This document shows positions 15,679 to 37,965 of a stretch of DNA of 64,000 bases, one piece after another. The notes below the pieces were generated by a model. The model saw only the letters and a program-made list of their open reading frames with translations, did no database searches and was not told the origin of the DNA. The position numbers and the translations under genes were made by a program. Every line of letters begins with the position of its first letter. Positions within the stretch are counted from its first letter, which is position 1. Source of the stretch: Salisapilia sapeloensis CBS 127946 (lineage: Eukaryota; Protista; Oomycota); assembly GCA_023334545.1 (NCBI GenBank), contig JAADVB010000038.1, positions 1 to 64,000 on the forward strand, read 5' to 3'.

Positions 15679-17562
15679 TTATCTGCGTCGAGCTACCATC
15701 CCCGCCACGAATGTCGCCACTGCCAGACCTGACAGCACGTACGCCAGCACCGGAACGTCCCACTCGTCCTGGATGTCCAAGTGCTTGATCATAAGCTCTC
15801 CCTCGCCCTCCACCTCGTACCCGAGGCGACGGTAAAAGTTCCGGACACCCACGCCGGCGATGACCGCAACCTTCTTGGCTCCTTGCTCCCGCGCAATCTC
15901 CTCCGCTCGCCGCATCAGCCGCGTGCCGAAGCCTGTGTGCTGGGCGTGGGAAGCGTCTAGATCGTCCACGCCGCCGTTCGCCGGTACCTCCACCACCTTC
16001 TCCTTCTTCTTCCCGGCGAGCACTAGCTGACCGTAGACATGTAGCTCTCGCACGAGCGCCGCACCTTCGAGCTCGGGGAAGATGCCTCCTCCAGCCGTCG
16101 GCGACACCCGCAGCCGAGCGAAGGCACAGATCTTCTTCCTGTCCGGCGTCTCGTAGCTTAAGAAGTACTCGTCTCCGCCGTTCGCTCTGTACTTGCGCTC
16201 GACGAGCTCCGCGGCGGCGATGGCCTTCTCGTCTGTCTTAACCTCTCGGCAGCGAATGCACTTGCACCGCTGTCCTCGCTCGGCCATCTTATTCGCAATC
16301 ACCTGCCGGAGGTTGGGCTCATCTGCGCCGCCGAAGATGTATTGGCTCGGGATGTCTCGGATGACGCGATTGAGGCGGATCCACGGGTGCACCTGGCTCT
16401 TGACTCGCATCAAGAGCTCCACCATCTCCTTCTCGCTGTACGGCACAAAGTCGCCCTTGTCGTACCACTTCTTTATGACCGTCCACGGCGTGATTTCGCA
16501 CGGATAGATCTTCCACTGGTCCGCCTGCAGGTCCTCCGAGTGCAAAACGTACTCGAACATCTTCTCATCCTTCTCGGCGTCGCTGCCTGGCAAGTTGGGC
16601 ATCAAGTGGATGTCCGTCTTGTAGCAGCAGTCTCGAAGCAGCTGCAGGGCCTTGACGGCGTCCTCCGTCGTGCACCCGCGATTGATCTTCTTGAGGATGT
16701 CATCGTCCGTGTGCTGCAGACCGAGCTGCACGCGCGTGCAGCCGTATCGTCGGAAGCGCCGCAGTTCCTCTTCGTTAATGCAGTCCGGACGCGTCTCGAG
16801 CGTGATGCCGATGATTTTGGTCTGCGCCGTCTCGTTCGCCAGCTTTTCCTCGTCCAGCGACATGCGCTCTCGGCGGTTCTCGACTGGGTCGAAGAACGTG
16901 TTCGCGGCGTAGAACAAATCCCGGATGAACGTCTCCTGGTACTCGTGCGGATACGACGCCCACGTCCCTCCCAGCACCAGCAGTTCAATCTTATCGACCG
17001 GGTGTCCGTTCATCGCGAGCGTCACGGCCCGATCGGCGAACTGGAGGACAGGGTCAAAGTCATTCCGATTCGCTCGCAAGACACTCGGCTCGTCATGCAG
17101 GTAGCTTCGCGGCTGATCCGGTTCGTTCGGACAGTAGTAACAATTCCACTGACAGCTGAATCGCTGCTTCTTCCCTCCTACTTCCGGATATGGACTCGTG
17201 AGCACCGTGATGACGAGGACACCGGATTGACTCTTCTGGGCCTTCTTCACAAGCAGTCGGTCGATCGCCATTCCTTTCTCGACTTCACCTTTCTGGATGA
17301 GCGTGTTTAGCATGAGCTTCATCTCGGACTTGCGAGGAAGGCAGCGGAACTCTCGCCGCAATTGGACAAAGGCCTTTTCGAGGTCCCGAGGCGTCTGCGG
17401 ATCGAGGTCGACGAGAAAGCGGACCATGTCTTCGTACAACGGCCGCTTTTCCGCCGGCACGAGGTTCTCCCATGTCGAGTAAATGTCCTCGAGCGTCTCG
17501 TTCTTCCAGTCCGGACCTTGGATGCTCCGTTTGTACGTGTTCGGGTCCTCCAAGTCGCCCAT
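15679..17562 (-). CDS. ELP3: Elp3-like radical SAM/GNAT acetyltransferase with a C-terminal transmembrane tail
   Basis: CxxxCxxC ('CQWNCYYC'), 'GITLETRPD', 'VQLGLQH', 'RELHVYG' and 'QHTGFGTRLM..AE', followed by a hydrophobic tail ending in RRR. Confidence 0.88.
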   Translation of the reverse strand: MGDLEDPNTYKRSIQGPDWKNETLEDIYSTWENLVPAEKRPLYEDMVRFLVDLDPQTPRDLEKAFVQLRREFRCLPRKSEMKLMLNTLIQKGEVEKGMAIDRLLVKKAQKSQSGVLVITVLTSPYPEVGGKKQRFSCQWNCYYCPNEPDQPRSYLHDEPSVLRANRNDFDPVLQFADRAVTLAMNGHPVDKIELLVLGGTWASYPHEYQETFIRDLFYAANTFFDPVENRRERMSLDEEKLANETAQTKIIGITLETRPDCINEEELRRFRRYGCTRVQLGLQHTDDDILKKINRGCTTEDAVKALQLLRDCCYKTDIHLMPNLPGSDAEKDEKMFEYVLHSEDLQADQWKIYPCEITPWTVIKKWYDKGDFVPYSEKEMVELLMRVKSQVHPWIRLNRVIRDIPSQYIFGGADEPNLRQVIANKMAERGQRCKCIRCREVKTDEKAIAAAELVERKYRANGGDEYFLSYETPDRKKICAFARLRVSPTAGGGIFPELEGAALVRELHVYGQLVLAGKKKEKVVEVPANGGVDDLDASHAQHTGFGTRLMRRAEEIAREQGAKKVAVIAGVGVRNFYRRLGYEVEGEGELMIKHLDIQDEWDVPVLAYVLSGLAVATFVAGMVARRR

Positions 17563-18037
17563 CGTGATACGCACTGGATGAGCTTGGCTTTCGGTGGTCA
17601 CTTGGCACGAGCAATTGTTGGTCGTGGTTGGTGGGAGTACATTTAGCACACCGTCTGAAGTAGCCCAACTTATGATCGGAGGACGGAGACCAAGGCGAAT
17701 GGACCGGTGTAGATTACTAGATTAACAAGGACGATACCGTACATGTCGGTTCTTCAAGTACATCAGCAATGAGTCATGCGTTATCCATTTCCTACTAATA
17801 GACAAAAGTAGACGTATGATGTCGATGGACAGTCGAAACCTATCCGACGAAGGATGTACCCATCCGCTCGAAACGCAACTAGTCGACGGATACGCACTTC
17901 CTGAAGACTCGAATCGCCCTCTTCTTCCGACACAGCGAATTACTTTCGCTACTTCAAATCGAGATAAAAATTGTTTTTCGTAAGAAAGCACTTCCGAATG
18001 CAAACTGTTCCATTTACCACTTCCCAATCTGCTCCGA

Positions 18038-19150: not shown

Positions 19151-20389
19151 TTAGTGCTTGTCGCTAGCTTCTCCTCTTTCACTCGCGATTACACTAGCCA
19201 ACAGCTTCTTCTTACGCTCTGCCTGCTGACGAGAGCTCTCTTCCATACGCGCTATAAATTCTCGTCCGACATCCGACCACGCGTTCAGGTGGCGGTACTT
19301 GACGCCGCAGTTCTGACACCGCTTCTTCTTGTCTCGCAGCTCCGAGTACGTCTGCTCACACAGACAAATCGGGCAGCTCTTCTTATCCTGCCAACTCAAA
19401 TCAGTCCAAACAATCCGACCGTCCTGTTTATCGTAGCACATACCACACGCACGTTGTACTCTTCTTCCAGACGTCTCTGCTCTAGTTTCTACACCCCAAC
19501 TCAATTGGACTACCGACAATATACCTCCACATGGAAACCAACGTACCCGCTGCCGATTGCGCTCGGCTGTCTCCATCCGTGTAAGGAACTCATCTCGAGA
19601 GCCGGAGTCAAAGTCTTCCGAGTTGTCAGACCCTCGATTCCCATGACGACGCTTTAGTTGGAACCTGCAGTTCCTTTCCTCATCGTCCAGCGTATACTTT
19701 CGTCCATTCACCTGGACTCTGTGCGGCTGAGCCAACTGCTCAATCCGATCCTACAAACACAAATGAGCTTCCATCGCTACTCTCCTCTACGCCTTGCTAT
19801 CCAAACACCGTACCGGGACCTTTGCTGGGCACATATAGAACATTAGCTCATTCATCATCCGACAGAACACTCATACGCTAAACAAGGACAGCGTACATGA
19901 TGCAAAACGAAGTGTATTCTTCTTCATCGAGCCGTCCACATCCGCACGACTGGTCTTCTCCATCAGCCGTTGCTTGAACAACTGCACTCTCGTCGGACTG
20001 AACAACACATTCGGATACAGACTCGTGGTCGACGAGCCTCTAGTCTTTCGATTCGCTTGAGTACGCTTCGGCTTGTTAGCGTGCATTGCCGGCCCTTTTC
20101 GATGCTCTCGGCCTTTGAGTGATTGGTGGAGTACTGAGCCAAGACTATCCTCTGCTTTCACTGGAGCGTCCTTCACCTGGCTGCTTTGAATCGCAGTCAC
20201 CTTGGCCATCATATCTGCAAGGTCATCATCACTGTCACTGTACTCGTCACCAGATGAATGCAGCTGGTCAGACGCATTCGTATCTGCTTTGCTCGAGCCC
20301 AGCTTTCGCTCCGATCCATTTTCATCGTCATTCACGAATTCCTCTTCATTGTACTCTTCGAATTCGTCTTCCTTATCCATGCCTGTCAT
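19151..20389 (-). CDS. Hypothetical protein with an acidic N-terminus and Cys-pair (zinc-ribbon-like) C-terminus; probably multi-exon
   Basis: Two same-strand ORFs (19871-20389 and 19151-19735). Cys pairs 'CGMC', 'CPIC' and 'CQNC'. Joining them into one gene is inferred. Confidence 0.45.
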
Positions 20390-21899
20390 TGCACTCTTGG
20401 TTGATCTAGATGTTCTCTTTTATCTAATAATAGAGCTATCAACTGCACATCCAGACATGCCACAAAAAGATCTAAATATACGTGAAAGCCACATCTGATG
20501 CATCCTGCAGTGCGAAATCTTTCTACAAACAGGATGAAGCCAGTTGAAGTAGCGTATCTGGTGTCTGAAAGAAGGATTAACGATTTTTACCCGTCTAGAG
20601 TCACTAATCCGTACCAACTATTCGCGAATTTACCATGATATCCTCCAGCGCTTGACTCTTTACCAGCGAATTGAGTAGGGAGGAACAAAATGAAGCAAGA
20701 TGTGTTGAAATTGATCGAAGTTTGTCTGCCCTCAGCTCAAAAGGCGACGTACATACGGAAGCTAGATTACCCAAGCGAAGCGAATGCAAGCGAGTGGGCT
20801 GCACAGTATTATTTCGATCCAATCAATCTGTCGGCGACATGATTTTCATCACCTCGTACACAGTATACCTTTACCAGATTACCGACATTGCTTGTTTAAT
20901 CAACAACATGCACAAAATTCATCACCGTCGATACACCACAAACTCTTTCCCAGTAGCAAGATGCTATCTTTTGCGCTTGCAGACAGGTACTAGTCTTGAG
21001 GAAGCCAAGTTTGCGGAATGCTGCGTTACCTCTAGGCTCGAGAAAAGGTCGGTACTATCCATCATCTGAAAGCGGTACATGTGTAGATACGCCACTTTGG
21101 TAAAAGGCACAAGCAGCATCTTGAAGACAGCCGGTCCTTTCCAAAAACCGTCCAGTGTTCTAGGAGCAGAGCTGGAAAGTGAACGATACATGTGCGCGCG
21201 GGATGTGGGTTACCACTAACGCTGCTCCTGGTATCGTGCACATCGTCTGAGCATTGCTGCATGCGATAGCAGCCCTCCTCCTCCAGCTCGTAGGACCATC
21301 TAGCGCTCCACAGAACAGAACTTCATTCCTGAGGACCAAAGATCACAAATACTTCCGAAGCGACACTTGGGCTGCCGGCGCTTGACATGGAAAAAATCGC
21401 ACAGGACGGGTATAAGCATGCAGCTATTCCTGCTTGTTTAGAGAATCTATGGACCGCTCAGCCACGATAAGGTGTACATGCATGCTAGCTAGCTGTCCTG
21501 TATCGTGTGGTGAACGATGCTGCATTTGTACGCTTACAACAGGCTTCGAAACCAAGCTACAAGCTCTCGTGTGCTTGGAAGGTGCATGCAGACGGAATGA
21601 AGCGGAGACTATCACAGCTAAGCAGGTTCCTACTCGCATTAACAAGTGCCAACCTGCTCGTCCGAAACGCGAAGATTTCAACTAAATAACTGCCTTCGCT
21701 TCTCAAGGTTATCTTCGAGAACCAAAACACAATGCTTGCGTGATAATCGTTTTAATTGCTGCCTCTGCCCCATGCTTGCTGCAATATGACTTTCCTCCTC
21801 GTCCGTGTAGAACTCCGGGTGACAAGCATTCCCACGTGAATGTTAGCTTTAAGTCAAAACAGAGCTACAATAACACTGGCTGACTAGCTATTTCTTACA

Positions 21900-24800
21900 G
21901 TCGTTCCAGCTCACACTTGCTGCCGATGAACTAGCTTTTGCGACTGTAAGGAACGTCATGAGAAAAGCATCTCTAAATACAATGATGCTTTATTAAATAA
22001 GCTTTTCGTCTAAGAAGTTTCAATAATTTAATATTTTACTAATTTTAAGCCTATCAAAGCGTGTACGGCAATGAAGTTTTTGTTTGTGGCGCATTACACA
22101 AAAACTCTCAAAATTTTAACATTATGTGAAGGTTATAACTTTATAACATACTCAGGTCTAAATTAATAAAGAAATGGCAAATGCAAACACAACAACTGCG
22201 TGACATCGCAAAAGCTGAAAAATAGCAACTTCTATGCTATTTAGAAAACACTTTTATTTGTAAACAAATATTTGTCTGTTTATAACAGTAGAAAAAAAAT
22301 TTACGATATAACAAAAGGCTATAAACGTATAGCTGTAGTGAAGATCAAAAATTCCACAGGTATGGTTTCATAAAAACCACATGGAATGTTTCGTAACTAC
22401 CGTCGCAAACTGTTCTACCTTTTATATTTATTTCTCATGTACTATAAAATTATAAACTAGTCGTTTATCATTAAAAATTGCAGATAGTAAATTTAATTGC
22501 AACGCAAACCACAACCAAAAACTGTAAGCACTACCACATCAACTATAAAAAATTTAAACTTTAAAATATAATCCTATATATTAATACAACAAAAAGTTAG
22601 CACTGTAAACATTATAGATTCATATATGTTGAACAAGACACGATACGCCATATAATACTTTATCTAATTAAAAACAATGTGTGAAGTTAAAACAAAAACA
22701 GTATTTACAAACTCGGAGGTAACATTTTCAACATAGTTAAATGGTAGAGCTAAACATTCACAACATGACTGTTTAGAAAAATAACACTAGACGATAACAA
22801 GCAAATATTTTGTTTAAGCAAAAACAGCATACAAAAAGGCTTTATTAAAATAACAAGTAAAAAACAGAAAAATTGTATATGAAATTTTATTACAAAGATA
22901 AAAATGCTACTTTATATAGAAAAAGGCAACTCATGCAAAAATAAATGCTGCCAATGTTTGTTTATTAGTGCATGAATAACCAAACGATGAAACAATGCGA
23001 AAAAACAATATAACACGATACTACATGTATTAAGAACTGTATTATAAACATTATGCAAAGTTTTTACAAATAAAAAAATAAAAGTACACTTTAATTGCAA
23101 TACACATTATATGTAAAGTTTCTTTGTTTGTAAACATTTATAGCAGTTGCTCTATAAAAAATAACGAAATTGCGTATGCAAAACACAACAACAAATTTAC
23201 CAATATTGTCAAGTTTATTGACACAGCAAAATATTAATTAATTAATATTAACTTGTCGTATAATAATTTTGCGTGATATTTGAATTTAAAAAAAAATTTT
23301 TACTTGACAACTTCAAAAAATTGAATGCAGAATATTTACAATAATACAAAACAAAATAGTAGAGTATTTAGCTCAATTAATTTAAAATTCAGTTATTTAT
23401 TATATTTATTTTTTGTATGCTTATGTATGAAAAAGACTAAAAATTAATACAATAGTAAATATTTAAACGCCTATAAACTAACACTATTTAAAACATTTAA
23501 AAAAAAAATAATACTAAATTCAAAAGATTATGTTTTAAATAAATTTTTCTGCAGTAAATCTGTAAAACACAGTGTGTTTTATTGTGTCAAAATAGGTTAG
23601 ATTAAAAAAACATCAATTTTTTATATATAATATTGACACATTATTTGTGATCTGATAGATTTGCATCGAATGTGACAAACTACATTGTGTTTGTATGCTG
23701 TGTTTAAACTTTCTAAACATGACTTTATGTTTATGTTTTTAATCTAGCTTACGTAAATACTATATATATAAAAAAAATTTAACAACAAATTATATCTCTC
23801 AAAAAAATATTGTTTTAACGCTGACAATATAAAATTGATTAATGCGTTCGTTCTTCAGGTTTCTACTTGTGTATGAGACAAGCGATTTTTTTTGTTAAAT
23901 TTTGTTAAACCTATTAGTTTTTTACATAAATCTCTTTTTTAGACTATGTAATTGTTCTTTAAATGAGTTTTTTGTCAAGTATGTATGTATTTAGTTTTGT
24001 TTTGTTCGATGTGTCGCATTTTGCATATAATTTACTGTAAGTTCGTAAATGCTTATTGGTTTAAAGAAATACAAGGCGTACTTGTACTTTGTAATATTTA
24101 CAACTAAAAGATAAATACGCATGATTTTAAGGCTAAATATAGTGAAAAACCCTTCATTTATAAACTGTCTATTGACAATGTGTGTTAAACTCTTGTTATT
24201 CTTTTAGCTATCACATAAAGCGCAATGTTTTTCTTTTTTTTTACGTTCACATTTTATATAGAATTATTATAATAATATAAAGACGTCTGTAGACATTTAG
24301 CAGTTTAACATATTTCTTTTTGACAATTACATATAAGTTATATTGACAAATTTGTTACCTCTAAAATATTTGTGCGTAGCGGTGTTATCTTAAGAAGAAT
24401 ATATTTGTTTGTTTTTAAAGCAATACATTTAAATAGAATATGTTGATTCATTATTAGTTCTACATATTGAAACGGCTATATATGTTTAGCGTTGTAAAAT
24501 AAAGTTGTAAGCTTGTGCGAAATTTCAACACTAATTTTGCATCTACATATGGATTTTCGTTTTCATGTAACAGTAGAACATTGTAGAACCTACCTATATC
24601 TAAGCGTAAGTATAATTTATCTGTATGTACAGTTGCAGTTTATAATACATGCTTTTAGAAATGTGTACCTTCTTGTGATAGAGGTTTTCGTACATCTTGC
24701 CTTAACTTTGCCGCGATGTTATATACGACTAGCTTGGCATATATACCAACTAAAATTGATGTAGAAACTGCGCTAATGCTGTTTAGCACAAGTTTGATGT

Positions 24801-25500
24801 GGTAATTGTATCGTGTTGTTTTGTTAGATACTATTATGATTTGAGTCTTATAGAGGTTGTTTAAACGTGACGTTGCGCTCGTCTTATTAATCAAGGTTAT
24901 TTTGCTAATTTTCCTGATGTATTCTTGTGTACTATTCAAGCTTCTGCTAAACACTTTGTCGATCTGGCTCACGTATTTATTATATGTATCATGAAGAGCT
25001 TTAGATTAAAGAATGCATTTGTAAGGTATTTAGTTCGTTTACAGCCTTTTGGTATGCTCCGGTTACTAGGAGCGTTCAATTTGCTACTTCATTGAGTGAT
25101 CTTACATACCATACGTATTGGTGTATACCTGAGGACTTATGGTGATCAGCTAATGTAAACATATATAACTAAGCCACTTAAATGGTAACTCAAAGTCGTT
25201 GCTGTCGTTCTTGGCGTTATTAGCTTCGTTCCCGCGTCCTGGAATTTTCTAAGTATAATTTTCTTTGAATTTATAGATCGCCGTTCTCTTAAATTGAGTC
25301 TGGCACTACAAGCACATAAAATCGTTAAAAGTAATATGCCATTCATATATATACTCTAGTGCTTGTGTCGGTGCTGTTGGAACAATGTTATTTTATCTTA
25401 TATTTCGATGGCATATTTCAGGGATTTACTTTCAATGTTATGCTTGTTTGCAATTACACCTGTTCTATGAGATGGTTGCTTGGCTATCTATGCTGGGATG
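21900..25500. other. AT-rich, ORF-poor trough with a strand-skew inversion (candidate centromere/origin)
   Basis: Hand counts: line 23401 9/60 GC, 23461 9/60, 22861 10/60, 24241 13/60. No credible ORF. A- and C-rich top strand on the left, T- and G-rich on the right. The composition is certain; the function is inferred. Confidence 0.6.
23206..24349. repeat. Dispersed cluster of TTG(A/T)CAA and TTGACA motifs
   Basis: Full heptamer at 23206, 23304, 23972, 24172, 24320 and 24343. One-mismatch copies at 23218, 23584, 23633, 23672 and 23821. Confidence 0.7.
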
Positions 25501-27531
25501 TGATGCACATGTACTAGGCTCGACGAAGCTAGTAGCTACAGACGAACGATAGGCACACGTTGCTGTTTAAATTAGCTTACAAGCTTCACCTTTCTTATTT
25601 TGTCCGACACTGTTGCTCGACAAGCCTCCCATGCGATATGATCGCTTTTAGGTAGGCTGACTAGCGTGTGTTCGACTAATTGCCGACGACAAATGCTCTA
25701 GTAGAGTGCCGGTTTTGAACGTTGTAGTTGAACAAAATCAATAGGCATGTGAAAGGCGGTCTGAGCTGCCTGGATTGCTATTTTGTATATAGTATTTCAT
25801 TAGTTTGGAATCATGACTATTTTGTAGATCTTTCCGTCGGTGAATGTACTGGACACGGCACTGCCTACTGATTGCATGTAGTATATGTGCGCGAATTCTT
25901 CAGCTCGAATTTGCGGCAAGTCAACGCACAAGAGTGGAGCTATATGATGTTTGCATGGTTCACATCCAACACAGATATACTTCGAAGTCTGCTGCTTATG
26001 TACACTGACTGTACTGCGTTTCGCAATATAACAAAGAATGTCTTGTTCGGTGCTGTATAAGGCAAGTCGAAATACCAGTACCTGGATTATCTGCAACCAC
26101 TCGAGCTCTTTTGTTTACATCAGGAGCACAACGTTACCACAGTTGGGATGAAGCGTTCTCACAGGCTAGGCATAAAAATCTTTTTCGCGTGCAGCAATAT
26201 TACTCGTCTAGATTACTGCAGGACGTCGAAATCAGCTATTGAAGAAAGTAAAGTTTAAAATGTACAACTTCGTAGCGAAAAGTGGCAGCGCACAAGCTGC
26301 TGTCTGGAAATAGAGTACTGTACTCGGTTTTCTTCAACTCTTTTCCTATTGCTTCCTTTCTATACGCTTCGGATTGGTTAACGCACCGTGAGATGCTTCG
26401 CTTGGAGACTTTTGGTGTCATGTCATTTTCAATTCGTGGCTAGTTGTCGTGCGCGACCTCACATTGGATGCCAATACGACAGTCGTGTAGCAAATAGAAT
26501 TCACTAGGTCCTAGATGTACTGACCGCGTTAAGTAAAGCACACTGCTTCATCAATGCCGCAATTCGCTTGCTAGAAAAAGAAGCATGCGACTCTTGTCTC
26601 TCACTACTAAACTACGTTTTCACAAATCTTTATGCATGAGCAGGCAGTAGGATCAGAAGTGGGCCGAAGAGAAAGATCCACTGCTTTCCGTAGGTCCAAA
26701 TCTTGTGTCATAGTCTGTACCCTGAATAGGATTGTAGTATGAACAGTAGCTACGATTGATGTAATCAAAACGACAAGCTTCGTCGGTGAAACGTAATGCA
26801 GGTCAAGTTTGTAATCGCACTTTGACTACTTTAGTACTTCCCGAATACTTTTGATATGAATTGAGATTTCACGGACACTAGACACCGGATTCCATCGTTA
26901 AAGTAGAATGTGTAAATCTAGTGTCTATAGGTCAAGATCCTGGCCGAAGCGGTATTTGTTGTCGTACGAGTATGATGTACTTCAGCATTAATCTCTGTCC
27001 GTAAGCCATTCTTGATAAATAGCACATTCTCTACATGCAAGTCTTGCTACGACGTACCTTTTATCCTAAAATAGTAAATCGAAACGTGAAAGCAGTAGGA
27101 GCAAATCATACGCTTGTCTGTACACAAAGCTATTATGTACTTGGCAAATTTGCGACTTATGAGCGTAACTCCATGGCATGTTTCCGTCAACTTCAATAAA
27201 TGGGCAGCTCAAAGCATATCGGCCCGCCGTGGGCAGAGTAAATACTATAGAATTTCGATTTGATCACTATTGGACTCTACCATAATAGGTCCTGTAGATA
27301 TGTCTAGATCACGGTGTCCACTTCCAAGACCGATACCTGTGTTTCTGTGCCGATGGAGACTCTATTGCCTCTACTTTCAACATGGAAAACTACGTCTTCG
27401 TCTAAATCTCATATCATATTTCCTGCTCTGTCTAGGCCTCATCCGACCACCTTCGGCATGCAAGGGACATCGTCATGCAATATTCGAATAGAAAAGAAGG
27501 ACGGTTCGTGTTGGTAGTCGAAAGTCTATTT

Positions 27532-30500
27532 CTACCTACGTCGCTTGCTGAGACGCCATGCGTCCTGCGGATTGAAGCGGTCGTACAGCGGCTCGATCTT
27601 TTCATTCCGCTTGCGCTTGGACAGTTTCGACGGATCTCCTTTCTTAAAGAACGCAGGCGCGAGTTCCACGAGCCACTTGGGCTCAATCGTCATGATCTGG
27701 CGCATGTACTCTTTCGTCGTCAGCACGAGTTCATGGTAAAGCAGCCACTCTGGACTCTTGTTGAAGAGCGCAGAGGACGGGTGGATGTAGACTGGCTGTC
27801 CCTCGACCATGGTTCTGTAGCCTTCCTGCGGATCCTTCTTGGCCGTGTTGGCGAAGTAGCCCGACACGATGGCTTTCCGTACCTTGTCGTAGCTCTTTCC
27901 ACACGACACGACGTCCATCTTATATCGATCCAAAATCGCCAGCAGCTGCTTCCGGACGTCCTGCGCTCTCCGAATGGCTCTGGCCTGGATAAAGTTCTCG
28001 TAGCACCAGGGGTTGGAGAACTTGCTGTTCTTCCAGGCATCGTAGACCGCCAGGAGCGTCAGGTGGTCTCCCTCTGGCTGGTGGAACTTGGCTTTCTTCT
28101 GGTCCGCCTGCGCCTGCTTCTCCTTGGGCCGGAAAAAGATGTTTTCGACACTGAGCATAGCGACGATCGTGAGCACCTCCTCTGCGCACCCCAGCACGAC
28201 GCTCGTGAGCAGGACCTTGGCGTTCTTGGGCTCGACGGGAAACTCGGCCATTTTCCGGCCGAGTCTTGTGAGCAGCCCTTCGTCGTCCAGCGCACCGAGG
28301 GCAAAGAGGTTTTCGAGGGCGCTGACCATGGCTTGTTGGGGCGGAGGGTCCATGAAGTCAAAGGCCAGGAGGTCGTTGACGCCCATGGCTTTCAGCTGGA
28401 GGACGACGCTGCCGAGGTTGGCTCGCTGGATCTCGGGCACGGTCGTGGGAAGCATTTCGTTCTTATACGCGTTCTCGGTGTAGAGTCGGTAGCACTTGCC
28501 CGGCCCTGTCCGCCCAGCTCTCCCCGCGCGCTGCCTCGCCGACGCCTGGGAGCAAGGCACTACGACGAGCGAGTCCATGCCGATCTTGGCGTTGAAGGCG
28601 TTCTGCTTGCAGAAGCCAGGGTCGACGACGTAGTAGATGCCATCGATGGTGAGGGAGGCCTCTGCGATGTTGGTCGCCACGACGCACTTGCGAGAGCCCT
28701 TGGGCGCCGGCTCGAAGATTCGGGACTGCATCTCGGACGGGAGGGCTCCGTAGACGGGGAGGATGATGAGCTCTGGGGCGAGAGCTCTGTCTTGGAGAGA
28801 CTTGATGCGCTGGTACAAGACTTCGCAGGCCGTGTCGATCTCCTCTTGGCCAGTGAGGAAGAGCAGGATGTCTCCTTCCGGCTCCGACAGGTGGATCTGC
28901 ATGACACACAGGAGCGCTGCGTCCAGGTAGTCCGTCTCCGGTTCCTTGGTGTATAGAATCTCGACCGGGAACGTCCTGCCTGGGATGGTAAAGATCGGGC
29001 AGTCGAAAAAGTAGCGAGAGAACTTGTCTGCATCGAGCGTCGCAGAGGTGATGATGAGCTTGAGGTCCTTCCTCTTCCTCGCGAGGTCCTTGAGCAGACC
29101 GAAGAGGACGTCCGTGTTGATCGTCCGCTCGTGCGCTTCGTCCAGCATCAGAGCACTGTATTTCGAGAGCGTCGGGTCCGCCAAGTACTCTCGCAAGAGC
29201 ATACCTTCCGTCATGTACTTGATGATGGTCTCGGACGACGTGCAGTCCTCAAATCGCATGCTGTACCCCACCTCCTGTCCGAGCTCACACCCGAACTCCT
29301 CCGCGACACGCTTCGCGACAGAAGACGCGGCCACTCGTCTCGGCTGCGTGCACCCGATCAGCCCCTTGGACGTGAGGCCCATCTCGGCCATGTACTGCGT
29401 CATCTGCGTCGTCTTGCCGCTGCCAGTCTCGCCGATGACCACCAGCACCTGGTTGTCCGCAATGGCCTCCATCAGCTGCTTCTTGAGCGTGAACACCGGG
29501 AGCGACTGCCGCTGCTCCAACAGAGACTTGTTCGACACGATCCCGTACGACAGGTTCTTCCCCATGCTCTTTTGCTTCCACTCGGGCTGCTCCGACACGC
29601 CGCCCATGTTGATGCCACGAAGCTCCTGCGCAAAGTGTCTGTCCCCAGCGTCAGGCATCGGGTCTTCCCACGGACGATTCAGGTCCTTGGGAATAGACTC
29701 GATCAGCTCGTTCGCCTGCGCCTGCCGGAGCTCTCGACGCTCCTTGGCCAGACTCGACTGAGTCAGAGCAGCCCGCTGGAGCGTCCCGTCGGGGTTCTTG
29801 ACGATCTTGACGGGAGACAGGTCCTTGGTGGCAGCTGTCTGTCCTCGGAGGAAGACCGGCTCGTCCTCATTCAGCTCCACCTCGTAGTTCTCTTCCGTCT
29901 CCTGGGCGTTCAAGACGCCTTGGTCCTCGTCCAGCGTCGGGTAGTCCTCCATCGACAGGACGCCAGAGTTGATCAGCTGACGAGCCTCCCACCGTTCCGG
30001 AGACGACATGCGCTTCGACATGCGCTGGACCTTGCCATCGTCCTGCTGCGTCTGGTGGCTCATGCCAGGCGCAGACGGATTCACCCACGACCGGTCCGAC
30101 CTCGCAGCCTCTGCCTTGGCTTCCGACAGACCTTCCGACGACCGCATCGGCTTGAGGTCTTCGCCCGTCCGCTGGTCCACCTCCTTCATGGACATGCTGA
30201 GCTTCCGGCCGTTCTTGCTGATGACTTTGACTTTGACCCGGTCTCCTCTGCCTAGCACGTCCTTCGGATTCGACACGCGCTCCCGACGGATGTTGGAGAT
30301 GTGGACCAGACCTTCTCGGTGCTCTGCTTGGACGTCCTGGAGCTCCACGAACGCCCCAAAGTCCATCAATTTCACCACTTTGGCGTCGTAGATTCCGTAT
30401 AGCTCTAATGTCCGAGGGGGAGACCGGCCTCTGCGGCGCCGACCGAACTCGTCTCTATCATCCGACCGACGAGAGTCGTCTCGACCTCGACGCTCTTCCG

Positions 30501-30834
30501 TCGTGGCCATGTCGGACTCTTGGAGACCTGGAATGTCCGACACGGTTAAAGGACCTTCTGGCTTGGAAGAAGGCTTCTTCGCTTTTGCCTTGGCTGGGTT
30601 CTTCTTTGCCGGAGCAGCCGTCATGGTCTGTACGATCCGATGGAGGTTCTGGGCCAGAGCCGTCGGCAGCGGCAGGTCGTTGGCCTTGATGGCCTGGAGG
30701 AAGTCGTCTACAGACGGATTCTCACGGACCATGTCGATGACAAACTCCGCGACGGTCTTGTCACTCATGCCTAGATGTGTCTCGAGCTCCGTGCATACCT
30801 TGGAGACGAGCGATAGTTCCTGCAGCTTGTCCAT
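27532..30834 (-). CDS. PRP22: Pre-mRNA splicing DEAH-box helicase Prp22/DHX8
   Basis: S1 domain ('[13 protein letters not shown]'), '[12 protein letters not shown]', '[10 protein letters not shown]', 'DEAHER', 'SAT' and 'QRAGRAGR'. C-terminus 'KIEPLYDRF...AWRLSKRR'. Intronless. Confidence 0.97.
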
Positions 30835-31093
30835 CTCGCGCCGGCCGAGAGCTCGGTGTCTATTAAGTCTCCGGAGGAAGACGAAAGAGTTGTGGAGGTT
30901 CTTTCGTCTACCAATCACGACACCTGGACATGAGATATATCACCATGTGACCAATAGGACGGAGGAAGGACGCCGGAAAAACAGGCGGAAGGCTTGAACG
31001 GAAGACGGAGGAGGAAGCGAAGCGCAGAGGAGAGCTACTTGGCACAGACAAGTAGCGTTATTATATCCTAAGAGTAGTACACTTCAGAGGAGG

Positions 31094-32071
31094 ATGAGTC
31101 AAGGTGGACACTGGTCAGCGATGGGCGCCATGTCGTCGTCGCCGTCGCTGCCACACGGAGCTTCGTACCTGCCCAAGGCGCAGACGGACGACTTCGCGCC
31201 TATCATCAAGGCCATGAAGGTCGAGGAGAACGCTCAGAGGCGGCAGGGTCGGTATCCAAGTCAGAAGAGTGAGAACGAGGTGTCTGCTGGAGCAGCGTCA
31301 CCCACGACGTCGGTGGCGTCGTCGACGACCAGGGAGAGAGGGAAGAAGCGGTATCCGTGCGAAGAGCCCAACTGCGGCAAGTCGTTTGACTCTCGCTGGG
31401 CCTTGGTCCGGTACGTTTGTAGTAGTAGTAGAGAAAGGAAGGAGATGCTGAGACCTGGGCTAGACACATTCGAGTGCACACCGGCGAGAAGCCTTTTCCG
31501 TGCACGTACCCCAACTGCGGCAAGTCGTTTGCTGAAAAGTCCGCCATGACACGGTACGTCTTCTATAGGTAGACGATAGGCCTGTACTAAGTTGTGGGTG
31601 TATAGACACTTGCAGACGCACTCTCGCGTGAAGCCGTACAAGTGCACGTACGAAGGCTGCAGCAAGAGCTTCAAAGGGAAAGATTACCTCGGTACTCTCT
31701 AGTGTCTTCATCTCGTACCAAGCCACTAACTCTGGACAGAATTCCATCTGAAAATCCATGAAGAAGGGAATCCGTACGCGTGTGAGTTTCCCAACTGCTC
31801 CAAGACCTTTTGCAGTCCCAAAAGCCTCAAGAAACACATGCGGCAAGGCCACGGCCAAGACGTCGACGTCCTGCCGCCTACGCAAGACCCCAAGCCTCCT
31901 TCGGAAGCGCCTGAGAATACGTCCGTGGAGCAGTTCCTCCGCGACCGGATCATCCGGATGGCGACGAGAGACAAGGAGCGTTCGCAGCGGTATGAAGCGA
32001 CGATCCAGGAGCTCCGGGAGGAGAACGAGCGTCTCCAGAGACGTCTGCTGGAGCTCGAGCCTCCCCTCTAA
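31094..32071 (+). CDS. C2H2 zinc-finger transcription factor (four fingers) with a C-terminal coiled coil; three introns
   Basis: '[16 protein letters not shown]|[13 protein letters not shown]', '[13 protein letters not shown]' and '[19 protein letters not shown]', then '[19 protein letters not shown]'. Confidence 0.88.
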
Positions 32072-32147
32072 CGTCCTAGTATCAATGTATGTGGAAAAGC
32101 AACAAGATTCGTTTTTGTCAACTGTCTGTCTGTCGCTCGTGTTCAAG

Positions 32148-33785
32148 TTACATCCCGCGGGGCTTGGGGCCTCCTGCCGGCTTGCTCATGATGATCTGGT
32201 CCACGCGGAGGACGGTGATGGCGGCGTCGGCGCCTAGTCGGATGGCCGACTGCTTGGTCTGCAGGTGGTCCCAGATGCCCTTGGCGAGCGCGTCTTCCAC
32301 CACGTGCCTGTCGCTATAGTCGTCCACTTCGACGCCGGCGCTGCTCTTGCCTGCTGCGTGGAGAGAGTAGAGTGCCGAGAGCACTTCCGTGGCCTGCTTC
32401 CCAGAGTTCTCGGCCAAGATCCGCGGCACGACTTCAATCGCGTCGCCAAACTTCTTGATGGCGTACTGGTCGAGGCCTGGCGTGGACTCACCAAAGGCCT
32501 TGATCTGACGAGAGAGAGAGAGCTCGGTGGCGCCTGCACCTGCCACGAAGGCGCTCTGTTTGCACGTCGCCTTGAGGCAGTTGACGCCGTCGTCGATGGC
32601 GCGCTCCATGTCGTTCAGGACGTTGTCCGTGGACGCTCGGAGGACGATGGTGGAGATCTTGGCGTCGTCCGACTCCTGCGTGAAGAGCGTGACCTTGTTG
32701 CCGCCAATCTCCTTGACCTGGACCTTGTCGCAGAAGCCCATCTCGTCCGGCGTCGGCGCTCCGAGACGCACGAGCGCGTGGGCGTTGACTGCTCGGCAGA
32801 GGCGACGGAGCTCCCACTTGGACGTGATCTTGACGGCCATGAGCTTGTGCTTTTCTAAAAAGTGGAGCGCCATCTCGCTGATGCTGCCACCGGACACGAC
32901 GACCGAAGCGCCACTGTCTGCGATGGCTCGGATGGCCTCCTCCAAGTGCTGCTCCTCGCCCTTGTTGTAGTTCATGAGCTCGTCGGCGTCCTTGATGAGC
33001 ACCGTGCTCTTGGCTTCGGTCGAAGAGACCTCGAGGCCGCAGCCAAAGACAGCGACCTTGGCGCTCTCGGCCTTCTTGATGTTGCCCTCAGCGTTCCGCT
33101 GAACCGCCATGCCGCGCACGACCATCGAGTCGTGGACGTTCCCGCCGCGGAGCTTGCAGACGCGGATGTTGTCGACGTTGATGCTGGGCTTCTTGGGCTT
33201 GGCCGGCATCACGTTCAGACAGGCCTCTGCCACGAGGTTGGAGAGCAGATCTTCGTACCCGTACTGCTTGGATGCGAGAGACGTCTTGACGGCCTTCTGG
33301 AGCTCCGCAAGGTCTCGGACGTCGGATGGGCCGGTCGTCGGCGCCTGTTCCAGCAGCTCGACGCACTTGTCGTAGGCTTTCTGGTACCCCGTGACGATCT
33401 CGCTCGCGTGGAGACCCATGCGCAGGAGCGACGCTGCTTCCATGAGCAACTCGCCTGCGAGTGCGACCGTGAGGCACGTTCCGTCGCCATAGTCGTTCTC
33501 CTGCATCTTGGCGGCCATGACGACCATCTTGGCTGCTGGGTGCACGACCTCTAGCTCCTGGACGATAGCTGCCGTGTCGCTCGTGACAAAGATCTTTTCC
33601 AAGTGGTTGATCACGAGCTTGTTCATGCCGTTCGGTCCGAGCGAAGAGCGTGTGATGGCCGCGAGCTGTTTGACCGCGTCAATGTTCTTCGCGACGGCTT
33701 CGTCAACACCTTCAAAGTGCTTATGTCCTTCTTTGAGGAGGGAGGAGAGCCCTCCGGCGACATTGTAGCCCATGGATTTCGACAT
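32148..33785 (-). CDS. CCT8: T-complex protein 1 subunit theta
   Basis: 'SSLGPNGMNKLVINHLEKIFVTSDTAAIVQELEVVHPAAK', 'GDGT', 'IERAIDDGVN'-like motif and 'DQIIMSKPAGGPK'. Confidence 0.96.
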   Translation of the reverse strand: MSKSMGYNVAGGLSSLLKEGHKHFEGVDEAVAKNIDAVKQLAAITRSSLGPNGMNKLVINHLEKIFVTSDTAAIVQELEVVHPAAKMVVMAAKMQENDYGDGTCLTVALAGELLMEAASLLRMGLHASEIVTGYQKAYDKCVELLEQAPTTGPSDVRDLAELQKAVKTSLASKQYGYEDLLSNLVAEACLNVMPAKPKKPSINVDNIRVCKLRGGNVHDSMVVRGMAVQRNAEGNIKKAESAKVAVFGCGLEVSSTEAKSTVLIKDADELMNYNKGEEQHLEEAIRAIADSGASVVVSGGSISEMALHFLEKHKLMAVKITSKWELRRLCRAVNAHALVRLGAPTPDEMGFCDKVQVKEIGGNKVTLFTQESDDAKISTIVLRASTDNVLNDMERAIDDGVNCLKATCKQSAFVAGAGATELSLSRQIKAFGESTPGLDQYAIKKFGDAIEVVPRILAENSGKQATEVLSALYSLHAAGKSSAGVEVDDYSDRHVVEDALAKGIWDHLQTKQSAIRLGADAAITVLRVDQIIMSKPAGGPKPRGM

Positions 33786-33928
33786 GGTGGTAGATAGACG
33801 TACGAGGTGTCTGGTAGATCCTAAACGCCACTTTGATCTTTGGACACTGGCGGCTGCTTTCTTATTGGACAAAAACTAGATCCGACAGATGTAATTGGAC
33901 GAAAAGGAGCAAGACGGTGGAAAGGGAC

Positions 33929-35068
33929 TTAGGCTTGTTTGGGTTTCCGGCTGCGGCCATAGTAGACGACCGTGGTGTCCATGAAGACACCGTAGAGGAC
34001 TTGGAAGAGAACGAGGACGGGAGACAGCAGAGACTCCAAACACGTGTTGTCTCGACGCGTACCACCGTTGGCCAAGATGCGCAGGATGTAGCCTGCGGCA
34101 TCACTTGCAATCGAGTACTGACCATTCGCCATGCCTTGGATGAGCGACTCGGCCACCTTGTCAGGATGCTCTACGTCACTCGGACCCTCAATGACCATCG
34201 TCTCCTTGGGCTTGGTCTTGTTCTCCTCCGCGTACCCTGGCGAGTCGATGTTGCCAGGGATGAAGATGCGGACGTGGACGCCCTGAGGCTGCATCTCCTT
34301 GGACAGCGCCTCTGCGAAACCTCGGAGAGCGAACTTGGACATGCTGTACTGCTGGTAGCCGACGAACGAGATGATGCCAGCAGCAGAGCTGACCATGACG
34401 ACCTGTCCGCCGGCCTGGATGTGCGGCAAGGCGGCCTTGACCGTGTTGACGCAGCCGAGGTAGTTGATCTTGACGGTCGAGTGGTGGATGCTCACGTCCT
34501 GCTCTTCAAAGTACCCTGGTTTCGCCACGCCGGCGCAGCAGATCAAGTGGTCGATCGACTTTTCATGGAATCTTTGGGCGTTCTCCACGGCAGATTGGAC
34601 CGCCTCGAGGCTGCAGACGTCGCAGGACTGTGTGAAGATCGGAAGTCCGTTCGGACATGCTGACTCTAGCTCCGACTTGGCACTCTCGAGAACACTCTCC
34701 TTCCGAGAGACGATCGACACCTGATGCAGTCGTTAGATGTATCGGTAGGCTCTAGCTAGTTCGTAGGGAGAAGTACTTTGGCACCAGCGGAGAGGTATCG
34801 TTTGGCGACGGAGAGTCCAAGGCCTTGGGAGCCACCTGTAGTGTACTGGTTAGATGGTGGGTGGTGAAGGTAGAAGGGAAGGACGCACCGGTGATGAAGA
34901 CGTGCTTGTCCTGGACGTGCCATCCTGGTCGATTGCGCTTGGAGATGACGCTGGTCTATTCTCTACGGTCATATATGGATGGTGGAGTGGAAGGTGGGGA
35001 CGTACGACGACAGCTCCGACTGCTAGGACGGCGTAGAGACCCAGTGGGTAGTACCAGATCGACTCCAT
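33929..35068 (-). CDS. KDSR: 3-ketodihydrosphingosine reductase (KDSR/Tsc10), multi-exon
   Basis: N-terminal hydrophobic anchor, 'DKHVFITG', 'GGSQGLG', 'YQQYSMSKFALRG' (YxxxK), 'PGNIDSPGYAEENKTKP' and a C-terminal hydrophobic segment. Confidence 0.82.
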
Positions 35069-37965
35069 TGCTACTTGTCGCGAGGTAGGTCGGATTGTCA
35101 AGTCTGATCGTATCAATTGTTAGAGGGAACAAGTCTCCGGCACTGGAGGAGCTGTCCAGTCTACCAGCCTTTTGTTATGTACGCTAGCTTTATGGACACA
35201 GGGAATTTACTCATATGCACCACTTCTGGCTGTGGGTAAAAGTATGGTTGCCAGTTACCAAGTGCCAATAGTTAGGACAGTGCTATAAGGAATGTACTTG
35301 CCTGCACTGAGTTTGTAGACACACAGTGGCCTTGTTTGTACGAATTGTCTTTATAAAGGTTTTTGGTTCTATGAGTTTGGGCTGTTGCTTGATTGCAGCA
35401 CCATAGTGGCGCAAGTGGAGGGAATAATTTTTTGCCTCAGTCTGCTCTGGATAGGACACCATGCCCATCGATCTCGTTGTAGCACGATACAGAGATAATT
35501 GCGAGTTCATTGCAAAGTTACGCTCATCTAGATCATGCTGAGCTACCACAGAACAGTCTATCTCGATACTTATCGGAGGCTTTCTTGCATGCACATGGAA
35601 GGACGTCCTTTGGCTAATAATTGTACGAATGCCTACGCTGATATCTGTAGAGGATTCTATGTATTTACAATATCGAGAGCATATCTATCTTTCAGCAGTC
35701 GAAACCCAACTGGGATGCGGTCTTAATGGTAAAGAATCTGGCTACGCACTAGATGTCCGAAGGTCTCTTGTCATGCGAGTCATACCACTACGACAAAATG
35801 CTTGTATGTGATACCTTGCAGCGAAATGTGCTCATACGATACGATTGTACTAGAGAGACACGTTTGATTCAAATCGAATACACACGCTAACGAAACTTGG
35901 CACGAAGGATCGAGATGGCGGCACGAGTTACAGGCAGGATATGTAGACATGAGGCAACATCACACTTACTGGGACATGGTGTGCACGATAATCGAGATAG
36001 ACGATTAGACCACTTCGTGTTGCATCGATGCCAGTAACTCGAGTCGCTTTAACGTTTGCAGTAACACACGCCAAGTATCCGATCATACGGTCATCTACAC
36101 TGTTTCATCATGTTTAACATGCACACACTAGAGGTTCTTGTAAAGCAAGCACTATCGATATATAAGCTGCACCACTGGTCACGACGAGGTTTCCGATGTC
36201 GACACCCGTGAGCGCCGTTCGAATATCAATTGCATCTTCCAAACTAATCAAGCGATCGGTGCAGCTTGGAGGTAGTTCTGTCATCTTTGTTTATACGCTG
36301 GTAATATGCACAGTCATCTGAACACAGGCGAGTGCTATCCGCAGTGACGCTCCATCTAATCTTCAAGATACATCCTGGAGATGTTTCCTAATGAGTATAG
36401 ATAAAGATTCGAGCAAGACAGTCTAGACGAATGGCATACTGATGCAGTCTCCTGATCTGCAGTGTATTCTCTACGGCAGTGCATGGAAAGTGAAGGAGAG
36501 ATCTGGTAACTTGTGGCTGATCTGTTCGATAAGTGTTTATGCTACGGAACCTGATCTGTCTGTTTACTTTCTGGCTGATCCTCTCTTTCATGTGAACCGG
36601 CACACGAGCTTTTATCTGGTCAGATACATCCTGCAGAGCGAACACACGGATCCAGGTATAGGCAAGATGTGCATTACGTTCTAGCATGGAGGGTTGATGC
36701 TTGGAGAGAGCAGATTGCAGCATGCCATGCGGAATATGTATTAGAATCGGATCGGAAGCGTAAATAGACTAGTGTGACTTGCAGTGGCGTGCTGAACCTC
36801 AATACCACTCCGTTCAGAGCTGTACTAATTAGCCACGCTGTCGTAATCTCCACAAGAGTACTCGTCTATGGATGAAAGTGCGGACGTCAAGCAGGGCGTT
36901 CCAACCGCCTATACTCGTGTCCATTGTCTTTGCCTCAGTATCTTGTACCGTGTAGCCATGTAAGCAAGCTCCAATTGCGATTCCTACGATCGATGCTAGT
37001 CGTCCTATTTTCTTGCTTTTAACACGACCGAGCACGGAGCGAGATACGCTTCGACCCAGCAAGTAGCATTGCAAATGTAAAAACGTCGTACATTCCTTTT
37101 TCCCATGACGCACGTGACTACAAGATGGGCGTTTCATAGCAGACTAACTTTTGCGATGCTTTCGTGCTATCGGATTGAACTTTTCGCTGTCAATTCGTCT
37201 TGTTGTGGCGTCCGAGGCTGAAGGACCCGACGGAAAGAAGGGTAGATGGTATCGACTAGTTGGTCACGAAGCGAGTATTGGAGCACAGAAGGATAGAATG
37301 TGCCGTTAAGGTACCCCTCCTAGGTTACCATCCATATTCTTCCATACTTGTTCTAGTGAGACGCTCGTGGAGGCGTTTCCCTCCGAGCCTGTAGAGTAAA
37401 GGCACGACAGCAGAACAGGTCAAGGACGGAAGATTAGAACGAGGCAGCGGCCCCTCAGGATCGGACAATTCCACGACAGCGTGTCAATCTGGGACGTATC
37501 GGATGGCTCCATGATCTTTTTTTCTCTCTTTTCTTCTGCGTCCGCACCCAGGTGCCCCTTGCACGTCTACTAGATGTATCCTGTGTTGCCTATCTTCCCT
37601 ACTCTCGAGCGTATAAGCAGGATGATTCTGCTAGAGGACGAGCGAACAGGAGGCTGGTCGCTCGACGTATAGATCGTGGCCACAACGGGCGATGCGGCTG
37701 GGTTACCAACGGCTTGGCGCGTCATGTGCATTTCCAACCAAACGCAGTTCCTTTGGTCGCACTTGGGCTTTGTATCGGGGGAGGCCGTTGGATTGAAAAA
37801 AACGTCTCGCCTCGGTGATTTCCAACACGACGACGCGCACTGGCTCTCCATGTTGCTCACTACCACCTCCGACCTCATTTCCCCATCGCCATCTCTTGCT
37901 CCAAGTCTCTGTGCACACGCCGTGCCACGGATTCCATCGGAGTTTGAATCGATACAATAGAGACC

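Follow-up and report, generated by a model that had tools for sequence, protein, structure and literature searches.

We analysed the first 64,000 nucleotides of contig JAADVB010000038.1 of the oomycete Salisapilia sapeloensis CBS 127946 (hereafter the window), in which an AT-rich trough lies within a gene-free zone and may constitute a centromere. The window has a mean of 51.7% GC, and its genes have 56–62% GC. GC content was profiled along it in 500-bp intervals with a threshold of <35% and in 300-bp intervals with a threshold of <33%. Every 500-bp interval within positions 21,776–25,474 lies below 35% GC, the lowest value being 19.0% at 23,040–23,539, and no other 500-bp interval in the 64 kb does so, which bears out an earlier, sequence-only reading of the window that had pointed to the trough. 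At 300-bp resolution, the AT-rich core, a candidate centromere core and CENP-A domain, spans positions 21,950–24,749 (2.8 kb, 25.6% GC). It is bordered by a left shoulder (20,400–21,949) of 43–51% GC and by a right shoulder (24,750–27,500) in which GC climbs from 30% to 48%, both without a long open reading frame (ORF). The left edge of the trough is steep, dropping from 45% to 28% GC over some 500 bp; a gradual change is seen only on the right. The first gene rightward, on the minus strand at 27,532–30,918, encodes the DEAH-box helicase Prp22/DHX8 with Pfam matches to S1, DEAD, Helicase_C, HA2 and OB_NTP_bind. The first ORF leftward (19,871–20,389, minus strand) encodes 172 amino acids (aa) and matches no Pfam family; further left lies Elp3 (15,679–17,649, minus strand). 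The names Prp22 and Elp3, proposed earlier from the letters alone, are both confirmed.

ORF and repeat searches also upheld the description of the zone as lacking genes, long ORFs, satellites and transposon motifs. The longest ORF in 20.4–27.5 kb has 132 aa, or 105 aa when counted from GTG or ATG, and the only frames of at least 60 aa in the core are one of 62 aa and, at the right end of the core, portions of two others (83 aa and 105 aa). The zone contains no satellite or tandem arrays, its short repeats occurring at chance level only, and neither Rfam families nor tRNA genes were found in it; flanking tRNA genes of the fission-yeast kind were likewise sought and not found. In this gene-dense genome, few gene deserts are larger than the 20.4–27.5 kb zone. 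Nothing else in the 22.4-Mb assembly of 1,365 contigs, including the mitochondrial DNA (mtDNA) contig C952, matches the 3-kb core; the hit to mtDNA that the earlier reading had named as refuting a centromere is thus absent. An origin as a nuclear mitochondrial segment or from another organelle was therefore rejected on the absence of any match in the assembly, in which C952 is the only mtDNA piece identified (5.3 kb), and on the absence of ORFs, rRNA and tRNA. The island in the window is genuine, and as a feature it is both discrete and unusual.

The interval 21,000–26,900 is covered with zero differences by a 47-kb Logan contig, built with different software at a depth of 41 from a publicly available DNA run of S. 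sapeloensis; this run is probably the source of the assembly, so the two are not independent. Three runs from a different study (X2, X3 and X5) are guessed to be RNA because each holds only about 16% of the words of the stretch, too few for genomic DNA of S. sapeloensis. Each yields a single contig of 1.2–1.3 kb, which begins at about 20,645 or 20,736 (264–355 nt left of 21,000) and ends at 21,930–21,985. On the evidence of these RNA-like contigs the left shoulder is therefore transcribed, into a transcript of about 1.3 kb that ends exactly at the trough wall. With no ORF longer than 132 aa in 20,645–21,985, this transcript is possibly non-coding or may encode a small protein. No RNA-like contig from the three runs lies over the core and right shoulder (21,985–26,900, the limit to which coverage was checked), in data that consist of contigs, where low-level transcripts would not show. 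The RNA silence anticipated for the whole region thus holds from 21,985 to 26,900 and fails in the left shoulder.

AT-rich islands of common anatomy

We took a census of comparable places by locating uninterrupted A/T runs in the assembly, first with a minimum length of 24 and then of 21, a procedure in which mtDNA must be excluded from the trough counts. Runs of at least 24 A/T mark 45 places besides the window island, and 31 of the 45 were inspected. Nine of these 31 share the anatomy of the window island, giving ten verified islands on ten contigs. Sequence inspection found six of the nine to be complete (C269, C590, C1089, C1122, C1289 and C863) and two (C631 and C878) to be truncated where their contigs end. 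The ninth, C1213, is an island that fills a whole 2.7-kb contig; its first 22 bases recur at C1322:59,202, and by this overlap it probably continues contig C1322. Twenty other inspected places have GC minima of 32–47% and represent ordinary intergenic DNA with a single A/T run. The search also returned C159, a 1.5-kb all-AT fragment, and C952 (1–5,291; 5.3 kb, 23.5% GC), which carries nad11, nad1 and nad4L consecutively and is mitochondrial. Among the inspected places the distribution of GC minima is bimodal, with a gap between 22% and 32%.

Clusters of two or more runs, each of at least 21 A/T, suggest nine more probable members, on C1 (109.7–110.1 kb), C358 (40.2–40.8 kb), C423 (3.1–5.3 kb), C519 (5.0–6.3 kb), C1159, C1167 (44.4–44.9 kb), C1189 (59.1–59.7 kb), C1228 and C1253; a similar cluster on C448 turned out to be false. 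Two islands never occur on the same contig, the contigs being no longer than 160 kb. Allowing for missed and fragmented islands, we estimate that the 22.4 Mb contain 13–24 of them, roughly one per Mb. At the end of contig C487 (33,686–34,302), GC drops to 32–36% in the last kb, which may be the wall of a further island.

The ten islands are built alike. Their cores measure 2.7–3.3 kb where complete and have 24–26% GC, their shoulders have 40–47% GC over 1.5–3.5 kb per side, and the gene deserts in which they lie range from 6.5 to >10 kb. Averaged over six islands, the GC profile is a flat-bottomed U with walls of about 0.5 kb. Neither blastn nor translated searches between the ten zones detected any similarity apart from one shoulder piece, shared between C1289 and C863 over 352 bp at 68% identity (L026:8140-8488 and L031:1386-1737). 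The family from which this piece comes, possibly of transposon fragments, is about 400 bp long and scattered over at least 40 places at 66–77% identity, often near contig ends; since its copies are dispersed and not linked to the islands, a pericentromeric repeat was rejected. No convincing common k-mer was found among the islands, the best 8-mer, TAAAACCA, being missing from the window island, and AA/TT helical periodicity was absent. The motif TTGWCAA occurs six times in the window island (23,200–24,360) as against zero to two times in each of the nine others. It was rejected as a motif of the class, with 16 occurrences observed against 11 expected, and is local to the window island.

The islands share a mirror-image strand asymmetry. 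In the window island, A exceeds T and C exceeds G on the left, T exceeds A and G exceeds C on the right, and both skews change sign near 23.5 kb. The cumulative (A+C)–(T+G) curve reaches its maximum at core position 1526 (about window position 23,525), and together with the half-core skews it places the switch point, a putative bidirectional initiation site, at 23,450–23,650, in agreement with the skews computed interval by interval. The AT skews of the two half-cores are +0.17 and –0.09 (permutation p<0.001), and the GC skews are –0.09 and +0.06 (p=0.028). The same polarity was found in 10/10 islands, with a permutation p≤0.012 for the AT skew in each, and the direction of the GC skew is alike in all seven complete islands. 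Because this polarity is unchanged by reverse complementation, agreement in 10/10 islands means a real common process (sign test, about 0.002). At the centre of the islands the (T–A) and (G–C) skews jump upward, as the composition of a replication origin does.

Dinucleotide frequencies set the cores apart in addition to the skews. The observed/expected ratio of TpC/GpA is 0.72 in the cores, as compared with 1.01 in the shoulders, 1.13 at other AT-run loci and 1.22 in genes. CpC/GpG is low everywhere, at 0.63 in the cores versus 0.70 in the shoulders, 0.79 at other AT-run loci and 0.80 in genes. ApC and GpC are in excess in the cores, CpG is close to 1 and CpA/TpG stands at 1.22. With these last two values and with islands that are mutually unrelated, hypermutation by repeat-induced point mutation (RIP) and CpG decay were both rejected. 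The skews and the loss of TpC point to a local, strand-asymmetric C-to-T process, such as deamination linked to replication or transcription.

A candidate short regional centromere and its alternatives

We interpret the window island as a candidate short regional centromere of about 3 kb and of the diatom or Candida lusitaniae type, defined by composition and not by its sequence, with a fixed replication origin embedded in it, at a probability of roughly 0.55; its kinetochore function is putative. The window island is a few kb long, unique, non-repetitive, ORF-free and strongly AT-rich, as short regional centromeres are, and it combines scant stable transcription of the core with a skew switch of the Candida type. 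The type would most likely be one that is known elsewhere and new for oomycetes. By comparison, the window island lacks the properties of the centromeres rich in Copia-like transposons (CoLT) that are found in oomycetes, having a 2.8-kb core in a 7-kb desert, no repeats and 25.6% GC. Copia reverse transcriptase (RT) domains match at only three places in the whole assembly (C881:3818-4543, C672:4023-4751 and C685:7559-8275), none of them on the contig of the window.

By analogy with diatoms, Plasmodium, Candida lusitaniae and C. auris, the AT-rich core would carry CenH3/CENP-A nucleosomes, for which there is room for about 15–20, and the kinetochore would assemble there. A fixed bidirectional replication origin would lie in the middle of the island, as suggested by the mirror-image skews and the core-specific loss of TpC. 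In each arm, the lagging-strand template, being transiently single-stranded, would have gained T and lost C. Long-term deamination of cytosine with a preference for TpC could in this way yield the AT-richness, the skew and the dinucleotide signature together. Divergent transcription from the centre would yield the same polarity, yet no stable transcript lies over the core. The sequence-only reading had likewise proposed a centromere of a few kb, which fits all of the sequence-level tests run, but its proposed cause of the AT-richness found no specific support. It had described graded edges and attributed them to a long-term loss of recombination and of GC-biased conversion. The right edge is indeed gradual, whereas the left wall is sharp and the six-island mean is flat-bottomed; together with the skew switch and the core-specific depletion of TpC, these features point to the local C-to-T process instead.

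Several considerations weigh against a centromeric function. Every oomycete centromere mapped or predicted to date, whether in Phytophthora, Peronospora or Globisporangium, is rich in Copia-like transposons (PMC7082073, PMC11139960), and a tree of Prp22 places S. sapeloensis inside the clade in which centromeres of the CoLT type are documented. A short-read assembly would collapse or drop transposon-rich centromeres, and an intact Copia element is present on C881, where the RT domain sits in an intact frame of 1,726 aa. The skews and the TpC signature are evidence of strand-asymmetric mutation, not of kinetochore function. That each chromosome has one island is suggested only by a rough count, made on contigs no longer than 160 kb, and the census is incomplete, with 31 of 45 places inspected and nine run clusters counted only as probable. 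Furthermore, arrays of five units of TTTAGGG or TTAGGG are absent from the assembly, in which the chromosome ends are unassembled; therefore, chromosome number is not estimable from a telomere count.

The alternative that survives best, though we regard it as unlikely, is that the islands are fixed, efficient bidirectional origins, or AT islands shaped by replication and devoid of a kinetochore, the true transposon-rich centromeres being missing from the short-read assembly. Both skews jump upward at the centre in 10/10 islands, which is the classical signature of an origin, and the loss of TpC fits deamination of a single-stranded template; the CoLT type of the known oomycete centromeres and the intact Copia element accord with this alternative as well. 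About 20 sites per 22 Mb are, however, far too few for origins in general, so that a special class of origin would be needed, and a 7-kb gene desert with a silent, uniform 3-kb core would be left unexplained. In Candida, moreover, the skewed origins are the centromeres themselves (PMC8262905). We favour a centromere over an origin alone because there are about 20 sites, with uniform silent 3-kb cores, in the largest gene deserts and never two to a contig.

It is improbable that the islands are chromatin elements unrelated to centromeres, namely scaffold/matrix attachment regions, domain boundaries or silent heterochromatin with a local mutational bias. The islands are AT-rich, silent, non-coding, discrete and uniform in size, which fits such elements. 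Attachment regions, however, are usually much commoner than one per Mb and vary in size, and a skew switch symmetric about the centre is not accounted for by any of these elements.

A little less probable still are decayed AT-rich insertions of foreign origin (mtDNA, a plasmid, a virus or a transposon), hypermutated by a deaminase specific for TpC. The mtDNA of S. sapeloensis is as AT-rich as the islands (C952, 23.5% GC), and the cores are depleted in TpC. The core nevertheless matches neither this mtDNA nor anything else in the assembly and contains no remnant of an ORF, rRNA or tRNA, and the islands are dissimilar to one another at the DNA and translated levels, save for the dispersed repeat in two shoulders. 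Independent insertions would not have equal lengths and skews symmetric about the centre, and the values of CpA/TpG and CpG carry no signature of RIP. An assembly chimera or a contaminant join is most improbable: AT-rich islands do often break this assembly and several of them lie at contig ends, but the 47-kb Logan contig crosses the trough unchanged, albeit probably from the same reads, and seven complete islands with both flanks are built alike.

The neighbouring genes were compared with those of other oomycetes. Compared over its full length, Prp22 shares 75–81% identity with its counterparts in Phytophthora, Pythium and Globisporangium; with those of Saprolegniales the figure is about 70%. 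In the single-gene tree, S. sapeloensis forms a long branch inside the peronosporalean clade, its exact position not being fixed. The searched collections contain no close relative for a comparison of synteny, the best full-length Prp22 identity being about 81%. In Pythium oligandrum, compared with window positions 27,532–43,266, the adjacency of TCP1, a small ORF and Prp22 is kept. Downstream of Prp22, P. oligandrum has the adh_short genes and a giant FYVE-DnaJ-FYVE protein, which in the window are found upstream of TCP1. Elp3, CTP synthase and Mpp10, which lie left of the island, were not found within 10 kb of the P. oligandrum locus. The island therefore marks the end of a microsynteny block conserved with P. 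oligandrum, and the support that synteny lends to a centromere is weak at best.

As a wider hypothesis, which we hold only tentatively and as possible rather than probable, a long-branched peronosporalean lineage would have swapped ancestral transposon-rich centromeres of >100 kb for AT-rich ones of about 3 kb, independent of sequence and each built around a fixed bidirectional origin. Deamination of single-stranded DNA at TpC sites in that origin would have made the AT-richness, replication thus making the composition that specifies the centromere. If the islands are centromeres, a compact oomycete would possess composition-defined centromeres of 3 kb, and the type of centromere would have changed drastically inside a single clade. 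They would then provide short candidates for the building of stable episomes, which oomycete genetics lacks. In addition, the skew switch and the TpC signature make it testable in a new lineage whether centromeres are ancient fixed origins whose composition is a by-product of replication.

Comparison with known centromeres

Within oomycetes, the centromeres of Phytophthora sojae mapped by chromatin immunoprecipitation (ChIP) measure 115 to >270 kb, are repetitive and rich in Copia-like transposons, and have the average GC content of the genome (PMC7082073). Clustered Copia-like elements also mark the predicted centromeres of relatives of P. sojae (PMC11139960). These CoLT-type centromeres share with the islands the organismal group, poor transcription and a scarcity of genes (PMC7082073, PMC11139960).

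The centromeres of Plasmodium and Cyanidioschyzon resemble the islands more closely, being AT-enriched, non-repetitive, 2–4 kb long and present once per chromosome, as a diatom study summarises them (10.1101/096016). Their backgrounds are distinct from that of the islands: Plasmodium centromeres have about 97% AT in a genome of 80% AT, and those of Cyanidioschyzon form only a small dip.

The skews of the islands find their closest parallel in Candida. In Candida lusitaniae, C. auris and C. albicans the centromeres are AT-rich and ORF-free, coincide with GC minima and show skews of both GC and AT (PMC8262905), and early origins linked to centromeres and bearing such skews are established in this genus. 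The small regional centromeres among them are, like the islands, ORF-free, unique, a few kb long, GC-poor and skewed (PMC8262905). Candida species are fungi and not stramenopiles, so that the likeness would be convergent at best, and their centromere positions are syntenic among relatives (PMC8262905).

The diatom Phaeodactylum tricornutum, a stramenopile, has 25 CENP-A peaks on 33 scaffolds in a genome of about 27 Mb, typically one per chromosome (Diner et al. 2017; 10.1101/096016). Its peaks average 39% GC in a genome of 47%, and a stretch of 500 bp below 33% GC suffices for them, whereas the islands have 25% against 52% and are uniform in size. The function of the diatom centromeres was demonstrated by ChIP and episome maintenance, whereas that of the islands is putative. 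A skew switch and a TpC signature, present in the islands, are not reported for diatom centromeres in the portion of that study available to us (10.1101/096016). Like the islands, the diatom centromeres are unique low-GC sequences of 2–5 kb with no common motif, spaced at about one per Mb (10.1101/096016), and runs of consecutive A/T matter in them as they do here (10.1101/096016). If the islands are indeed centromeres, they would link the oomycetes to the centromere solution of the diatoms.

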